From assembly GCA_038496445.1 (NCBI GenBank), contig JALMLS010000516.1:1-64000 (forward strand): a stretch of DNA of 64,000 nucleotides. Direction: 5' to 3'. How positions within the stretch are numbered: position 1 is the first letter of the stretch; every line of letters begins with the position of its first letter. Both the position numbers and the translations under genes were made by a program. The notes under the pieces are model-generated. The model was given only the letters and a program-made list of their open reading frames with translations. It did no database searches and was not told the DNA's origin. This document shows positions 8,305 through 63,079 of this stretch, piece by piece. The stretch comes from Trichosphaerium sp. ATCC 40318 (lineage: Eukaryota > Protista > Tubulinea).

Positions 8305-9924
8305 CTACTGAGTTAACATACGCTGGTGTCTTGTCGAAATACCTTCACAACCACTTAGATCAATGACATGCGCTGATTCTAAATAGCCAATAACCTTATC
8401 TGTTATAGTATGAACACGTGATAGGAATATACTATGAACACCAGCTAAAGCCTTAATACCAACATCAGTTACCTTAGTATAAGAAAGATCAATAGTATGA
8501 ACACCAGCAAGGCATTTAACACCAACATCTGTTACATTACTTCCAGACAAGTTGATGAAATGAACACCTCCTAAAGCAGAAATACCTTCATCTGTAACAT
8601 TGCAACCAGAAATATCAATAGAATGAACACCAGCAAGAGATTTAATACCAACATCTGTAACTTGAAAACAACCAGCAAGGGAAATAGAATGTACACCTGC
8701 CAAAGCACGAATACCTTTATCAGTAACAAGCATACACCCAACAAGGTAAATAGTATGGACACCTGACAAATATACAAGCCATGCATCAGATACTTGTCGG
8801 CATATGCTCAAGTCTATGGTGTGAACTCCAGTGATCTCTTTCATACCGTCGTCAGTCATATTAGTATTAGACAGATTAATCTTCTTAACACCCGCTAAAG
8901 ATTTAAGTGACTTATCTGTTAATTTATGACAATGGCTTAGGTTTATCTCATAGACACCAGAAAGATAAGAAATACCATCATCAGTAACACAATCACAACG
9001 ACTAATAGACAGTGTATGAATACCAGCAAGCATCTTTAAACCTTCATCAGTTATCTGATGACAAAGACTTAAATCCAAAGCATGAACACCAGATAAGTGC
9101 TCTAAATCAGCATCAACGACTTGTGTACATCCTTCAAGGTTTATAGAGTAAGCTCTTGATAGATGACTTAACCCTTCAGCTAGTATCTCAGTACACCCTG
9201 ATATGTTAATTGTATGAATGTTATTAAGTGTCATGATGCTCTTATCTGTTATATTGCATAACCTGCTTAAGTCCAATTTCTTTGCATCTTTTAATAGAGG
9301 CAATAGATCATCTGTCATTTCATAGCACAAAGCCGTACAATCGATTATCGAATTGTTTAATATGCCGCTATATTTAGATACTGTTGACACGTGTTTTGAT
9401 GTTTTGAGTGTAACCTTTACGTATCCTGTTACATAATGAATAATGTTTGCGATCCGCCAGCAAGTGCTTGCGGCAGCAAACCTCTCCTTGTTCAGAAAAC
9501 TCAAAATTTCGCCAATCGTTTCTGAAGGTAACGCGCAGAATGAGAACGTTGGTTGAGGTGGTAAGCTAATAGCATTAGAGCTGAGTCATTGAGCGTATGA
9601 AGAGAAATTAAGAAAGTTTTTGCTCGTAATACTTGGAAAAACAAAAATAACAAATGGAGAAAAGGTGTAGACGCGGTTTTAGTCATTTTAATCACAAAGT
9701 AGACACAAGGAGTAAGTTCAATAGAGTCTTTCATTGTAGATGAAGCAGCTGAGTTTATTAGCATACCATTGGCGTTTATTCATCGTTGGCGTTGTTTGCT
9801 TGATGCTGTGATTACACTTTGGAGTTACAGCGACTTTTGTTGATTTGTGCCGTTTTTTTTGTGAAAGCGTCGGAAGTCCGCTTCTTTCTTTATTGCTGTT
9901 TATATATAATGTATTGTTAATCAT
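8305..9924 (-). CDS. F-box / cysteine-containing LRR protein (family member 1)
   Basis: F-box LPSETIGEILSFL...ASTCWR, then ~14 VHTIDLSxCxxITDxGLxxLxG repeats in one ~1.27-kb exon. An acceptor at ~9583 implies an upstream exon, putative ATG 9924. 5' end uncertain. Confidence 0.85.
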
Positions 9925-37266: not shown

Positions 37267-40200
37267 TCATGTTTTTTGGGAAAGGGAAACAGCGATTGTT
37301 GGTGACATTATCGCCGCGTTTTGAAGGTCCTTCTCAAAGTAACGCGTATTTGATGTGTTTCCAAGTGGTTTTACGTATTCATCGTAATTTATAGATATAT
37401 CAGGCTTATAGTACTTAATAGTAGCTGCCAAGGAATCAACGTCGCCTTTCCACCTTTTTTAATCACGTGAGAACGAATACCAAAAACAGATTGTTTTTTT
37501 TCATCAAGTTTTTTTTTTTTTTTCGTGTTGACGTACCAGTACGGTATTGGTACAAGGGTTATACCAAGCTCCATGCAAATAACAGATTTCTCAATATCTC
37601 TTCCTTTAAAAACTGTAGACGGTTGTACATTGGCCATACAATCATGGTAATGGAGTTCTCCTGTTGCGAATAAGCAAGATGTAGAAAAAACAACGAGGAA
37701 ATTTTTTTACCTTGATACTCCAGAGCCAAATCATGTTCTGACACAAATACATCGACTGAAATATCTACACCAGTAGATTGTCTTGCACCTATAAAATGCT
37801 CTTCTTGTATATGACAAAAAGGAAAGATATTCTGTAAACTACTAGCCAACCATCTTTGTCTGGCTTTTTTTTTCATTGCTTCAGAAAAACACTGCCAATC
37901 AAAGTTGAACTCAGGGTGTAGTACTTGTAAAACTTTTGGGTAATAATTCAACATAGCACCACCGCCCTCATTTTGTATATCTTGTTGAGATACACGATAC
38001 CTTTGTAAAAACATTCAGCAACAAAGCTCAAAATTTCACCGTTTTTTCAAAACAAAATCAACATACCACATAGCAGGATCCGTTATATTATATTTTGCTT
38101 TGAGTTCCTTCATGAATATTATCTGTAATTCTTTATCATGCCAATGACCACGACGCTTGCGTATAGCACTTTAAAAATGTCAATTAGCAAGCATGCTATG
38201 TTTAATTTTTAAACGAGACAAACGCACACTGCCCGTTCCACTGCTTTCCAATTATACTTTGGATAAACAGCTTTAACAGCTCGAAGAATAGAACCACCGA
38301 ACCTAGGTAATAACAGTAAACTCGAGGTTCTTTTTTGCATGTTGTCAACAAGCCAAGCTCGTCGGATGTTTTTTGATAGGTATAAAAATAGGAAACTTAC
38401 TTCCTTACTATTGATCCTCCGCCATGGCCAATAATATGCTCAGGAGGTACTATTAACCAGTCTTCTACAGTTCTAATACCTATATTTCTAGCAATAATGT
38501 CAAGCCACAGTCTGTGGTTTGAAAGTTCATCATTCACATCTTCATCAGCGCTTGCTTTTACAACTTCATGCCAAATCGCACTTGTCCGACTATTGCTCAT
38601 CAGAATAAAGTACCTTGTATTGTATAATATTAACCGCACTTTTTATTCCATAATACCCAATGGTGATGAGGATATAGAGCCTTCAAGGCAATCGAGATAG
38701 AGTTAGAATACCTAGAAAATCGTTTCAATATTACAACTTTTTTTTTACTTTTTTTTTAAAAATTCACGTGTACCTGTTCATGACAGACGCCGCGTATATT
38801 TTTATGTCTTCTCCTGTGACGTTATACCATCCATCTAGTATCTTAATATTAAGATCATGAGCGATATCATTGAATAAAAGCCTTTGATTATCCACATCTT
38901 CCCAAAAACCTTGAGGTACTCCAGTGAACTTCCACAATGCCCAGTGTTTAGACGGGTACAGTGTCTGTAACATTAACAGAACAGAGTTACCAAACAGAGT
39001 AATTAAACGATTATGTCCGACAGCATTTATCTTCTTGCAAGTGACAGCATACCACTTATCAAAAGTAGTAACACCTAGCTTTTCACCAAGCGATTCAATC
39101 ATTTCTTGTTGATTTTTTAACATAAATTGATTTGCATATTTTGGCTTTTGTGGTAGTTTAATTATACGATCAGTATCTCTCCGATGCCTAGTAGGATATC
39201 AACATAGTTTTAAGGATACTTTTGAGCAAGTCTTCTTATACCTCTGCCGTACGACTGGATACATTTTCACCAGAATATCTTGTAGTTTGTTGACTCTATA
39301 TTTCGATAAATTCAAACAAATTATCTGACCCTGTTGCTTACCTTTCACCAATTCTCTTTGCATATAAAGCAATATCATTACGATCAAAATATTTCCACGA
39401 CCAATACTCTTCGTCTTCATTCACTAATGAGTCAAAATACTCTCTTATATGCCTTTGGAATTATGAGAAAAACAAACTAAGTTTGACCAAAAAAAAAATC
39501 AGTGTACATTTCTTTCCAACGCAACCAAGGGCACCAAGGAAAAATATTCTCAAGAGCTCTATAGAAAGAACCGTTATACCTAACTTAATTTAATCTTGGT
39601 TACTAGGAAGTATTATCGTACATATCAAGAATGTTCTTAAGTCCATGTTGTACAAGTACGCTTGTTTTTAATTTTAATAAGTCACTATAAATCTTCACCC
39701 CAAGAGTTTTTGACATATTCGCTATCTCGGTTCGTTGAACCTCTAATATCAAGGCAGTATGAGGTTTAGATCCTAGTAACTTTCTTTTGCGCATTTTTCG
39801 CTTTTCAAATTTTCTACTGTTGCGTTAGATGGCAAAGCAAGTACAAGCTTGTATTTTCGACCTGTGATTATTTTCGACATTGACGTAAGTTTTGTTATCC
39901 CTGAAGGTGAAGATATTAATCTTTGATCGCTTGAAATAATGTATCATACTCTATGTTATTTTTCCACTCAGGGTATAGTCCTAACGCAGCATTCTCCAAG
40001 GTGTTATGACTTAAAAATTTAGTAAGAATTTTCTAAGATTTTTAATGTACATTTTTGTTAATCGTCTGCCACCCAGCCTGTTCAACTCTTCACGTGGCAT
40101 CCCTCCAATATCATCACAAGTTTTTAGGTTACCTTGAGACGCAATATTGTTGAAAGCATCACGTTGATTGCTTGTTTTTTTCCAAAAACCGTTTGGTACG

Positions 40201-40670
40201 TTTCTGTTGAAAATGTTCAGTTTTCTTTCTCTAACAAGATGCTTCGTTACCTGAACCGCCAAGGTTCCCAGTCTTCGTCTGGATATAGCTCCTTGAGAGC
40301 TGACGTCAATGAACCATTGTACCTTGAATAGGTTAGTACAATAAGATAATTACACGTGCAACAAAAAATAATTTGTTGCGTACGAGCTCAGTAATATCGA
40401 GTGGGCTCTGAAACCTTTTAAATCGCTTGATACTATTGAGTACCAACCTGTCAAGTCCTTAAACGCAAACTCTTTGGCTATGACGTTAAATGCTGTTCTA
40501 TGCTCGAACAGCGTATTATTATGACTTTCTGCAGGTTCTTTGTGCGCATAACGACTACCGTGACGCTCTAACATTTATTCAGCGTAAAACGACTAGAAAC
40601 GCAAATTCTGTTTACCTTTTTTGTGTCCCCTCAGTATAGAGATACGTGCGCACGTTGTAACGGCAAACAT
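37267..40670 (-). CDS. Tandem helical-repeat protein with C-terminal PD-(D/E)xK (RAP/DUF559-like) nuclease-like domain, probable mitochondrial targeting
   Basis: N-terminus MFAVTTCARISILRGHKK. About 8 repeats of FWxxxxNQRxxFxxIAxxLxIxxxxxWY...GG..L..YxxS...L..LYP...W. Then VDVFVSEHDLALEYQGELHY...RDIEK..IC..LGITLVPIPYW. Stop TGA at 37267. Confidence 0.8.
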
Positions 40671-40832
40671 TATGTAAACAACACCCCAACAAGTACATTC
40701 ACACCAGCAACGCCTTTTGCGCTATTCTATACGCATACGGGTAACATTGGCAATTAAGGAGCGTGATTCCTTTGACTATTAACTTATTACAAACCGTTTG
40801 TAACGTACATTTACGGCGTACAGTGAGACTCA

Positions 40833-42589
40833 ATGAGCGAGGATTTGGTCTTAGATGACATCGACAATAGTTCTAGCGCCGAAAAAGATTCAAATGACAA
40901 GGACGGCACTGTTGGCACTTCAACAGTAGCCATTGCCATCGACGATGACTCTGCCAGCGATATCTCGCTAGAAGATTTGGAAGATGTCGAATACGAAGAC
41001 CCCAACGATCCAGCGTCTAAAAAGACAGTGTTTCAACGCATGAAGAACCAAATATACGTTGCAGCGTGCCCACAGCCTGATAATTGGAAGGGGTGGTATA
41101 TCGGTAAGTATAGGCTTTGCGCGTGTGAAGGCACAGTGCTACGTTTTGTTTCAATTGGGCTAACAACTGTTTTTTCAAAAGGACTTGGTATAGACATTGT
41201 AGCTTTAATAGTGTGGGGCATCGTTATTGGCACAGTTTTAAAGCCTGTTGACATTAAACGGTATTGGTTCATGCCTTTAATAGGTACGCTTTGCATTTCG
41301 GGCGTTTGAAGCAACACGCATCGAGAAATGGCGTTATTCGCGGGTTAAACCGAATTACACAAATCGCCGTAACTCTGACTTTCTAAATGGAGGCGATCGC
41401 TACACGCCTCTAAATCGCGCAGGCGCATCGTGTACTCACAAAGCTAACTAACTATTCGTAAAAAGGTGTATTGGGATCTACGATCGCTATGAGTACTCCA
41501 GCAGGCGGTGGTGTGTTCTTTTTTCCAGTCTTATCGGCTTTTCCTGAAGTTACTGAAGAACAAGCTATTGCTTTTAGTATTGCTGTACAGCTTGTCAGTA
41601 TGGGATTTTTTGGTTCTATTACATGGCACGTAATGGATTGAGCATGTAAAATAGCTTTAACAAATAGAGCTTTGATGGTTTTTTGGCGGTTTAGATGAGA
41701 AGTTGCTTATAATCTCTCTGTAGGCTTCGCCAAGCTCGGGAAGTTATTATGTGGTACCCATTGATTATAGCTGTAGTTATGGGATGGGCTGGATCAGCAG
41801 TGAGGTTAGCTAACCCGACATTTGTGAGAATTCACGAAGCTAATATTCGTTTTGAAATTTAGCATGTTCGCTTTACGTATTACAAACGGAGATGCTGTTA
41901 AGATTGGATTCGCTGTTTTTTCCTTGCTACTGGCTTTGTACATAGTGTACATGTTAACGTGCCAGCGTGGACGCACAAAGAAGAATTCTGGTAGGGGAGT
42001 GTCTATACTAGCTTGGAAGATGACACTCACTCTTGTAATATCATCTTTTGTTGGTGGCTTGCTTGGTACGAAAAAAAGGACTCTTGATTTTCTTGTTGTG
42101 TTTGTATGGCTAATATGTTGTTATAGTTGGCTACATTGCGGTAGGAATTGATGTATTGCTTTTTGCAATATGGACTGCTTTCTTCAAAGTAGATATTAGG
42201 CGTGCAACTGTAACTTCTATATTAATAATGGGATTCACGTGCATTGTTCCTTTCTTTGCTCATTTATTCCACTTTAAAGATATTCCAATAGAGTTATGGT
42301 TAATGGCTCTTGGTGGAAGTATTGTAGGCGCTCGTGTTGGTGCTATTTTGAATGTCGCTCTTGGGCGAAGAAAGTACGGAAGGCGATGAAAAACTTTTTT
42401 GTTTGGATTTTTTTATGTTTTGGTTGTTCGCTTATTTAGCTTTTTTCTAGGATTCTTGTGCTACTTATTGTACTTCTACTAGCAGAAGTTATTCGTACAG
42501 TAGTCGAGGTAGCCCTCGAAAAGGAGGTTGTAGTAGTAGAGGTTCCTGGTAATTCTACTATTATAGCAAACATTACAGCACCTATTTAA
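40833..42589 (+). CDS. TauE/SafE (TSUP) family transporter
   Basis: Acidic N-terminus, STPAGGGVFFFPVL, GYIAVGID, ATVTSILIMG, GSIVGARVGA; multiple TM helices. Confidence 0.8.
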
Positions 42590-50048: not shown

Positions 50049-50765
50049 TTAGTTACAATATGATATTTGCAAGAGCAAATCATCAAGTGTAAGACAAACG
50101 TCAAGTACACTACCTAATGACTTAATACATTCAGCTGTCACTTTTGTATCAATTGCAGCAATACTGTGCAATCCAACTAAATACTTCACACCTTCATCTG
50201 TTACATCTGTCATTGAGATGTCAAGTTTATAAACTCCTACCAATGCTTTTATGCCGTCATCAGTACCTGATGTTGCGCTCAGGTCAATGGTATGAACACC
50301 TTTGAGAGCTTTGATGCCTGTATCAGTAATATGTCTACAAAATGCAATATCTATTGTATGTACACCAGCCAATGATATCAAACCATCATCTGTTATAAAA
50401 GTACTCATTATGTTGATAGTATGTACACCTGCAAAGAGCTTCAAGTGACTGTCATTTATTGTAGTTCTCATTCTACTAGAAACATGAATTGGTGTGTTGT
50501 GCAGTAAAGGGCTACCAGAAAGTCTTTCTATGTCATCTACTCTTGAAATACAGATCACGTTGTATCCAACGTGTTTATAAACGATATTTCGTAGTAACCA
50601 ACACGTCTGTGCTGTATGTATCATAGAACCGCCTTGTGATAGAATATGAACTATTATTTCAACTGGTAGCGATAGTAGATGCTGTTTTTCATCATTTTCT
50701 TTAGATTGCTCTTGATCTTTTGATTCCGAACCAAATATGTTGAGTTGTTGAGTGTTATCCTCCAT
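50049..50765 (-). CDS. Intronless F-box / LRR protein (family member 2)
   Basis: LLSLPVEIIVHILS..AQTCW, then GVHTIDL...TDxGI repeats; single ORF. Confidence 0.88.
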   Translation of the reverse strand: MEDNTQQLNIFGSESKDQEQSKENDEKQHLLSLPVEIIVHILSQGGSMIHTAQTCWLLRNIVYKHVGYNVICISRVDDIERLSGSPLLHNTPIHVSSRMRTTINDSHLKLFAGVHTINIMSTFITDDGLISLAGVHTIDIAFCRHITDTGIKALKGVHTIDLSATSGTDDGIKALVGVYKLDISMTDVTDEGVKYLVGLHSIAAIDTKVTAECIKSLGSVLDVCLTLDDLLLQISYCN

Positions 50766-61303: not shown

Positions 61304-63079
61304 TCACCAAGAAAAAGCTCGCTTGTTCATTAAGGTTTCAGATATGTTTTTACAACGCTTTAGGCTTATCCTTTTAACATCACCCAAACTATTAATGGCA
61401 CCTTCAGTAATATTATCATTGCCAACAAGGCTTAATTTATGTGCATCCATAAAAACTTTAATCCCTTCATCAGTTACTAAAGGACATCCTCGGAGACATA
61501 CATTCCTTGCTCCACCGAGATACTTAACGCCTTCATCAGTAATTAGATTACATCCTCTCAATGATATGGTTTTGACGCCTCCAAGAGCCTTGATGCCTTC
61601 GTCAGTGACTTTCAAACATCCGTATAAACAAATAGAGTTGACACCTCCGAGATGCTTTATACCTTCACTAGAAACATTAACACATCCTTTGAGATTAATC
61701 TCTTGGACTCCAGAAAGTGATTTAATAGCCTCATCACTCACAAATATCCTATTCTTTAAGTTGATAATCTTAACACCACTCAAAGCCTTGATACCTTCAT
61801 TTATGTCAATAGTATTCGTATGTTTAAAACTCAAATCGATTGAATGAACACCAGCAAGTGCAGCAATACCAACACTAGTTATCTTTTTACAATTTGGTAG
61901 ACTTATAGTGTGAACGCCAGAAAGAGCTTCAAGTCCGTAATCAGTAATATGCCTAGGTGGGTACATTTTCTGTACACCTTTGAACGCTCTTATACCTTCG
62001 TCAGTAACATTCTTCAAAGCGCTCATCTCGACAACTCTAGCTCCTTTAAAAGCCATCATACATCTATCAGTTAACTTTGTATTGCATCCAAAATAAATAA
62101 CACTCGCTCCACCAAGAGGTATCAAATCATCATCTGAGAATCTATTTGAGCCTGTAATGAACTCATCTACTCCAGCCAACTGTTTATAAGCAGAAATTGG
62201 TCCCTTTAGCTGAGGTAAGGCTAATTTCTTTGCGCCCTTTAAATACTGTAGTATTGTAGTTGAAAGACCGTAACACCTTAGTATAAGGCTCTCAATACAC
62301 TTTAAGTAAGAGATACCTTTATCTGTAATCTTATAACTTGATACGCTCAAACACTTGACACGTGGAATATGCTTCAACCCTTCATCTGAGATATATTTGC
62401 AACGCATCAGGTTAATTGTATGTACGTTTGATAAGTGACATAGATGGTCATTTGTCACTGATGTACCACTCAAGTCAATAGTATGTAGATTAGACATAAG
62501 GCGAAAAGAGCCACTTGAAGGTATGGAGTAACATGCAAAGTTTAAGGACTTTGCTTTCGCTAATATTTTTGCAGCATCTTCTCCATAGCAGCTATAAAGT
62601 TCAATCTCTACTTTGAAATGTGCGTTTTTAAGTGTCTTGAAATACTTCTCTATGCAATCTATTTGTGAAAGGCTGGTTATTGACGCTGTTGCGTATCCCA
62701 TAGAGTTACGCATAAAGTTTGTCATTTTCCAACACGTTTTAGTTAATAAACCCCATTCATAGCGTTGAAGGAACGTAAGAATATGTTCTAGAATATCGGG
62801 GAAGAGGTTGATCAAGTTTTGATTGTCATTTGCTTCATTTTGATCTGACGCGTCTCTATAAGTGCGTTAGTGGCGTATGGGAGCAATAAAAGATGCTGGC
62901 GAAGGTAAGTAAGCGAACCAGAACAAACACAAGTAATGTTGCTAAAATTAGCAGCTGGCAGCATAATACGCAACAAGGAGCGTTAAATAAGATACAAAGC
63001 GGTATGCGGTCGACGGTAAAGGTCTTTTTCGCAAAAAATCTCCGTGCCTGTTAGTTTGGTTGCTTGATAGCTCCGCCAT
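61304..63079 (-). CDS. F-box / LRR protein (family member 3)
   Basis: LINLFPDILEHILTFL..LTKTCW, then ~17 LRRs in one ~1.55-kb exon. A ctaac...tag acceptor at ~62856 implies an upstream exon, putative ATG 63079. 5' end uncertain. Confidence 0.85.

Follow-up and report, generated by a model that had tools for sequence, protein, structure and literature searches.

The 64,000-nt stretch of DNA analysed here (the window: positions 1 to 64,000, forward strand, of contig JALMLS010000516.1 of Trichosphaerium sp. ATCC 40318, assembly GCA_038496445.1) carries on its reverse strand an intron-rich gene that joins an array of helical repeats to a nuclease domain. We consider it probable that the gene is genuine and nuclear and that it encodes a repeat-array endonuclease, likely mitochondrial, with DNA slightly favoured as the substrate. 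The encoded protein of 815 amino acids (aa) consists of a basic leader, eight units of about 75 residues, and a C-terminal domain of the Vsr/DUF559/RAP-like PD-(D/E)xK type. It presents a new repeat type within a known design, that of a helical array followed by a RAP/Vsr-like nuclease.

Between positions 40800 and 37200 a colinear run of open segments extends over the three minus-strand frames. These segments were joined by hand at GT-AG boundaries, on the basis of homology and splice signals, and the joined model was then checked by script. The result is an intact gene of 18 exons, with 2,448 nt of coding sequence and zero internal stops:

37267..40670, reverse strand: whole gene, 815 codons plus stop (splice model; colinear blastp to full-length homologues)
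40670-40616, 40567-40384, 40322-40251, 40203-40051, 40009-39950, 39900-39862, reverse strand: exons 1-6, from high to low coordinates
39816-39622, 39579-39508, 39452-39342, 39295-39242, 39187-38774, 38711-38640, reverse strand: exons 7-12, from high to low coordinates
38589-38401, 38302-38228, 38168-38067, 38000-37711, 37660-37537, 37453-37267, reverse strand: exons 13-18, from high to low coordinates

All 17 introns are GT-AG, measure 41-98 nt and, in 15 cases, lie in phase 2; donors starting with GTA are found in 14 of the 17 predicted introns. Three donors are odd (GTCGAA, GTGCGG and GTGCGT, at 39861, 38639 and 38227 on the reverse strand), and the GTGCG common to two of them may be a tolerated donor variant of this organism or else a sign of errors in the model. 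Exon 1 has 18 codons and is followed by a 48-nt intron, and homology support for both is absent.

The joined translation was compared only locally with homologue sequences, and external searches used single exons or homologues. In these local comparisons residues 42-776 align colinearly, in a single blastp alignment, with the homologue P0005 (841 aa), and residues 30-787 do so with P0013, a transcript of Cavostelium apophysatum. The closest relative is P0024, a complete open reading frame (ORF) on an MMETSP transcript (residues 215-784, 30% identity over 590 residues by blastp). Because these full-length, transcript-derived homologues are colinear with the model, we take the exons to belong to a single transcription unit, as the original prediction had proposed.

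To describe the repeats we used a profile hidden Markov model (HMM) of 75 positions, trained on 1,029 units from 151 homologues, none of them taken from the window. In the conceptual protein this model recognises eight units, seven of them clear (independent E-values, i-E, from 1.2e-13 to 4.9e-25) and one vestigial. Applied to the raw ORFs in all six frames of the window, the same model matches this gene alone, with the units in order, so that no second paralogue was found by this search within the 64 kb. The units are placed as follows:

40253..40505, reverse strand: repeat unit 1 (aa 40-103), i-E 1.7e-18, phase-2 intron at profile position 52
39964..40202, reverse strand: repeat unit 2 (aa 105-170), i-E 1.2e-13, phase-2 intron at profile position 52
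39513..39743, reverse strand: repeat unit 3 (aa 213-275), i-E 5.3e-14, phase-2 intron at profile position 52
39256..39400, reverse strand: repeat unit 4, vestigial (aa 295-327), i-E 0.43, phase-2 intron at profile position 52
38926..39120, reverse strand: repeat unit 5 (aa 355-419), i-E 7.6e-22, within exon 11, the sole unit without an intron
38648..38919, reverse strand: repeat unit 6 (aa 422-491), i-E 4.9e-25, phase-2 intron at profile position 52
38242..38537, reverse strand: repeat unit 7 (aa 512-577), i-E 4.9e-19, phase-2 intron at profile position 52
37886..38158, reverse strand: repeat unit 8 (aa 586-654), i-E 4.7e-18, phase-2 intron at profile position 33 instead

The modular array of helical units of about 75 aa that had been proposed from the sequence was thus recovered with a profile derived entirely from the proteins of other organisms. 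The consensus of the unit reads P4, W8, N13-Q14-R15, F17, L21, L25, D32-W33-Y34 and G45-G46 in its first half, and L49-L50, Y53, S56, L61, Y65-P66, W70, W73 and F75 in its second; the YxxS..AL..LYP..W motif noted earlier corresponds to Y53, S56, L61, Y65-P66 and W70. Pairwise identity among the units of the window is low (12-39%, mean 22%), and the duplications that gave rise to them are therefore old.

The introns carry a record of this history. In units 1, 2, 3, 4, 6 and 7 a phase-2 intron sits at exactly profile position 52, directly before Y-x-x-S, and six further phase-2 introns are located at the ends of units or just past them. The earlier suggestion that introns at the same place imply unit duplication agrees with this pattern, whose simplest explanation is that the array grew by amplification of a two-exon unit.

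The C-terminal domain is encoded by exons 16-18. On the raw ORFs, a nuclease HMM gave matches at 3.5e-13 and 1.8e-10, and the residues of the domain could be mapped to the genome:

37345..37885, reverse strand: Vsr/DUF559/RAP-like PD-(D/E)xK domain (aa 655-790), from the nuclease HMM and residue mapping
37751-37753, reverse strand: D699, conserved nuclease residue
37718-37720, reverse strand: E710, conserved nuclease residue
37712-37714, reverse strand: Q712, conserved nuclease residue
37650-37652, reverse strand: H716, conserved nuclease residue
37596-37598, reverse strand: D734, conserved nuclease residue
37587-37589, reverse strand: K737, conserved nuclease residue, with P752-x-W754-W755 further on

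An alignment of 42 homologue nuclease domains contains eight invariant and six near-invariant columns. The window protein has all eight invariant residues (D699, E710, G713, H716, D734, P752, W754 and W755) as well as five of the six residues at near-invariant columns; at 703 Pro is replaced by Ser. Judged by these residues, the domain looks like a catalytically competent nuclease of the DNA-repair/homing type. The motif described before as D-x9-E-Y-Q-G-x-x-H and its continuation is present, with a spacing of D-x10-E and not x9. A C-terminal EYQG..H motif, an (I/V)P(Y/F)WW motif or both occur in 70 of the 151 proteins scanned.

Using the 42-domain alignment, an AlphaFold model of the nuclease domain of P0024 (P0024:511-673), taken as a homologue proxy, was obtained with a predicted local distance difference test (pLDDT) of 87.4. 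This model has the restriction-endonuclease-like alpha-beta-beta-beta-alpha-beta core, and a RAP-type fold follows the helical array at the C-terminus; the RAP and Vsr fold scores are tied. With the conserved residues intact and a homologue model of this kind, the assignment to a Vsr/DUF559/RAP-type PD-(D/E)xK fold holds. Among Pfam families, DUF2726 gave weak matches in 22 of the 42 homologue domains (best E 6.4e-6), and in one relative, P0155, it exceeded the gathering score (29.6 bits against a cut-off of 24.7). The Pfam RAP model (PF08373) matched none of the 42 C-terminal domains at E<=1, nor any full-length relative. In the window gene itself the domain is interrupted by two introns, and its ORF pieces taken singly match no Pfam family at E<=1; the same was true of all eight ORF pieces of the window searched in this way. 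VSR, DUF559 and DUF2726 have been placed in one PD-(D/E)XK group together with the structures 1cw0, 3hrl and 3r3p (Steczkiewicz 2012, PMC3424549).

We were not able to find a known fold for the repeat. A stretch of P0034, a transcript of the heterolobosean BB2, spanning 345 residues and 4.6 units, was modelled with 113 colinear homologues and gave a pLDDT of 93.4 and a predicted template modelling score (pTM) of 0.69. Each 75-residue unit in this model is made of five helices, and a pTM of 0.69 in so elongated an array suggests a defined geometry between the modelled units. No entry of the PDB resembles the modelled array (best Foldseek E 0.35, template modelling (TM) score 0.14), a viral fold library gave no match to the repeat fold, and PDB sequence searches with exons 16 and 17 and with profiles A1 and A2 returned chance-level rows only.

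By shape, the modelled array comes closest in the ESM Atlas to clusters that carry the name DUF4046 (TM 0.46/0.58 over 198 residues, 0.45/0.46 over 231), and an Atlas feature search with exon 11 of the window gene placed a DUF4046 cluster at rank 11 with a score of 0.88. This uncharacterised Pfam family (PF13255) has a model of 90 positions, about the length of one repeat unit. Precomputed DUF4046 matches are present on some relatives, the best score among the relatives (P0235, 21.7 bits, E 3e-4) lying under the gathering cut-off of 22.8 bits. DUF4046 was outside the 25 most-matched Pfam families of the 113 multi-unit homologue segments, and it was not reached by the ORF pieces of the window. 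No paper that names DUF4046 or PF13255 came up in a literature search, and searches on RAP and helical-repeat proteins in Amoebozoa and on Lig E in amoebae yielded no description of the repeat. The unit fits best as a diverged relative of an uncharacterised domain family and lies outside every characterised one.

Two kinds of repeat to which the array had originally been likened did not survive this comparison. Hairpins of 35-40 residues of the PPR/OPR kind were rejected, since the unit has five helices in 75 residues and no PPR, TPR or OPR Pfam match; the Pfam models for PPR, TPR, OPR and FAST_1/2 matched neither the relatives nor the 113 multi-unit homologue segments. TALE-like repeats, which are near-identical and 33-35 residues long, were rejected as well, the units of the window being 75 residues long, only 12-39% identical and devoid of a single hypervariable di-residue. 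The low-information positions of the unit profile (38, 39, 42, 43, 47, 48, 51, 52, 58 and 59) follow an i, i+1, i+4 spacing and are spread over helices 3-5. They mark the exposed sides of these three helices, as would be seen in any helical domain, and are neutral on the question of a recognition code.

The protein begins with a basic leader, and a second basic segment lies within the array:

40536..40670, reverse strand: N-terminal leader (aa 1-29), basic by composition, taking in the predicted 18-codon exon 1
39780..39863, reverse strand: Lys/Arg-rich insertion (aa 188-200) with KRKMRKRK inside, between units 2 and 3, read from the translation

Residues 1-18 include two Arg, two Lys and one His and no acidic residue, the first being E19. 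For 84 homologues with an initial Met and 25 or more residues ahead of the first unit, we compared residues 2-21 with internal windows of the same proteins. The N-termini average 3.9 K+R and 0.8 D+E, against 2.6 and 2.5 in the internal windows; an acidic residue is absent from 49% of them, against 8%, and a net charge of at least +3 is reached by 65%, against 11%. Many N-termini of the family therefore look like classical mitochondrial presequences in their composition. The window protein, with five K+R and one D+E, is in line with this pattern (its exon 1 being predicted), and the mitochondrial-type leader that had been suggested for it fits the family. The KRKMRKRK patch may serve as a nuclear localisation signal or as an additional loop for binding nucleic acid.

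The window protein belongs to a very large family, and we found no paper that describes it. With exon 11 as the query (137 aa, 1.5 units) we obtained 4,795 cluster representatives at E<=1e-3, of which 366 have E<=1e-30; each representative has from 3 to 20 stretches that match. A word-indexed protein search with the same exon returned no match, as was to be expected from its length filter, which leaves out full-length relatives. Members of the family differ in unit number, from about 4 up to 20 or more, there are many divergent paralogues, and the nuclease is common to about half of the top matches. Named sources are Heterolobosea sp. BB2, which has several members, Cavostelium apophysatum, which has many, Echinamoeba exundans, Physarum polycephalum and the MMETSP transcriptomes; further members lie on eukaryotic metagenome contigs, and in the Atlas the window exon has as its neighbours clusters without names that belong to Evosea, Tubulinea and Discosea. 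Relatives in amoebozoans that lack a functional description had been mentioned in the original prediction, and this stands, whereas a purely amoebozoan family does not, given the members in the heterolobosean BB2. A giant-virus origin was also considered and rejected, as two homologue contigs bear the eukaryotic nuclear genes TBP, Utp12, PIG-Y, actin and Skp1. RAP proteins were reported as undetectable in Amoebozoa and Excavata (Hollin 2021, PMC8190603), yet the present RAP/Vsr-like repeat-nuclease family, invisible to the Pfam RAP model, is abundant in groups of both.

Some relatives carry further enzymes. In P0129 the nuclease is followed by an ATP-dependent DNA ligase, and P0221 likewise has an ATP-dependent DNA ligase. 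In P0231 (residues 522-677), a Cavostelium apophysatum transcript, array and nuclease are followed by Pol X fingers and palm (E 4e-25 and 7e-15). The occurrence of ligase and Pol X fusions on one type of array suggests, at the level of domain composition, a toolkit to nick, fill and seal.

We propose that the basic array (pI 9.4, compared with 5.7 for the nuclease domain) would lie along a nucleic acid and position the nuclease, which would cut or nick it through a centre formed by D699, E710-x-Q712, H716 and D734-x-x-K737. The array of each paralogue would probably select its own site or structure. Import into mitochondria seems rather more probable than another destination. DNA is slightly favoured over RNA as the putative substrate on two grounds: the enzymes fused to the array in relatives are a DNA ligase and Pol X, and the domain has its affinities, in Pfam and in structure, with DUF2726, DUF559, Vsr and I-Bth0305I. 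The nuclease had initially been given an equal lean to RNA and DNA; the nuclease is retained, and the ligase and Pol X fusions tilt its substrate towards DNA.

Several points weigh against this proposal. In the window protein Gln712 stands where the (D/E)xK motif canonically has Lys, although K737 may substitute for it. Nucleic-acid binding and cleavage are putative functions throughout the family, and the splice model, exon 1 included, is likewise a prediction from homology and splice signals. The structural evidence comes from the homologue proxies P0024 (nuclease) and P0034 (repeats) rather than from the window protein. The KRKMRKRK patch ahead of unit 3, as a possible nuclear signal, could fit a purely mitochondrial view poorly. 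Finally, the nearest architectural analogues (FASTK, OPR-RAP and HPR-RAP) act on RNA, and the domain has tied RAP and Vsr fold scores. It is possible, at a distinctly lower probability, that the protein is an organellar RNA-processing or RNA-binding factor whose array binds a particular mitochondrial transcript or rRNA and whose RAP-like domain cleaves the RNA or merely anchors it. Such a factor would share with these analogues the overall design of a helical array and then a C-terminal RAP-like domain, and presequence-like N-termini throughout the family and degenerate paralogues in large numbers, as in the PPR and OPR families, are also in its favour; moreover, with RAP reported as undetectable in Amoebozoa and Excavata (PMC8190603), the family could fill the RAP role there. 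However, no member has a Pfam RAP, FAST_1/2, OPR or PPR match, the enzymes fused to sister proteins are a DNA ligase and a Pol X DNA polymerase and not RNA enzymes, and in Pfam the domain leans towards DUF2726, a family placed in one group with Vsr and DUF559.

The ligase and Pol X fusions would also suit a generic DNA-repair nuclease, in which the repeats are a non-specific scaffold for docking or clamping DNA and the protein serves a short-patch nick-fill-seal pathway in the nucleus or in both compartments. Eukaryotic ligases of the Lig E type serve the DNA-damage response (PMC10665377), the KRKMRKRK patch would have a place in such a protein, and the best-conserved positions of the unit, N13-Q14-R15 and the Trp residues, are alike in all units, as expected of uniform rather than specific contacts. 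We regard this explanation as unlikely: a range of about 4 to more than 20 units and many divergent paralogues are hard to square with a single generic task, and N-terminal composition favours mitochondria over the nucleus. Least probable by far is that the gene is non-functional, either as a decaying paralogue or as two genes mis-joined in the model. The vestigial unit 4, the three odd splice donors and the predicted nature of the junctions would agree with decay or mis-joining, but 815 codons are open through 18 exons, every invariant nuclease residue is retained and the model is colinear with complete transcripts of other species. A functional repeat-array endonuclease, probably of the mitochondrion, hence remains our preferred reading.

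Helical repeat arrays with a RAP/Vsr-like domain, as in FASTK, OPR and HPR proteins, are the main eukaryotic means of controlling the genomes and transcripts of organelles. FASTK, OPR-RAP (Chlamydomonas) and HPR-RAP (apicomplexan) proteins are built from a hairpin of 37-40 residues or a FAST_1/2 domain, whereas the module here has five helices in 75 residues; the present family also differs from them in having no Pfam RAP, FAST, OPR or PPR match and in having relatives fused to DNA enzymes. The Vsr/DUF559/DUF2726 nucleases (1cw0, 3hrl and 3r3p, the last being I-Bth0305I) are small, mostly prokaryotic, and stand-alone or intron-borne. In contrast, the window protein is eukaryotic, comes from an intron-rich gene, has a long repeat array ahead of the domain and bears at its end a P-(Y/F)-W-W ... 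S-L-x-x-T-I extension peculiar to the family. With the TALE, PPR and PUF readers it has in common tandem helical modules of variable number that are joined to an effector domain or employed together with one, whereas their unit size and fold differ from the five-helix unit.

Other features of the window lie outside this gene. A divergent gene on the plus strand (40833-41309), with an acidic N-terminus followed by hydrophobic segments, starts about 160 bp upstream of the ATG of the repeat-nuclease gene, and the two probably have a short bidirectional promoter region in common. Three long leucine-rich repeat ORFs (8305-9504, 50049-50765 and 61304-62815, all on the reverse strand) contain a recurring GVHTIDLS-type unit, which looks like an expanded leucine-rich repeat family in this genome. 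At 394-1297, also on the reverse strand, overlapping ORFs contain a long tandem stretch of (P-T-D-A)n / (L-L-T-H)n that adjoins a domain with Cys and Trp residues, similar in appearance to a C-type lectin.

A more far-reaching possibility, to which we give little probability, is that the family constitutes an unrecognised modular recognition system. Each 75-residue unit would read a short segment of mitochondrial DNA or RNA, and nuclease, ligase or Pol X would be brought to defined sites by the arrays. In lineages that have insertional mitochondrial RNA editing, the heterolobosean BB2 among them, the paralogues could be the missing factors that recognise the editing sites. In BB2, mitochondrial editing comprises about 500 insertions, is probably co-transcriptional, and its site recognition is unexplained (Yang 2017, PMC5421314). 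A link between the repeat-nuclease family and editing is conceivable, and the evidence does not point to it specifically. Cavostelium, which is not known to have insertional mitochondrial RNA editing, has many family members.

The repeat module is one that has neither a solved structure nor a usable Pfam model nor a literature, in a family of thousands of members. The presence of the same array on a DNA ligase or Pol X in relatives suggests a shared targeting module for nick-fill-seal chemistry. TALE, PPR and PUF readers were turned into tools after their codes had been read; if the arrays described here are sequence-specific, they would provide a new recognition scaffold, and they would be a candidate answer to the question of how amoebae specify the sites of mitochondrial genome maintenance or editing.

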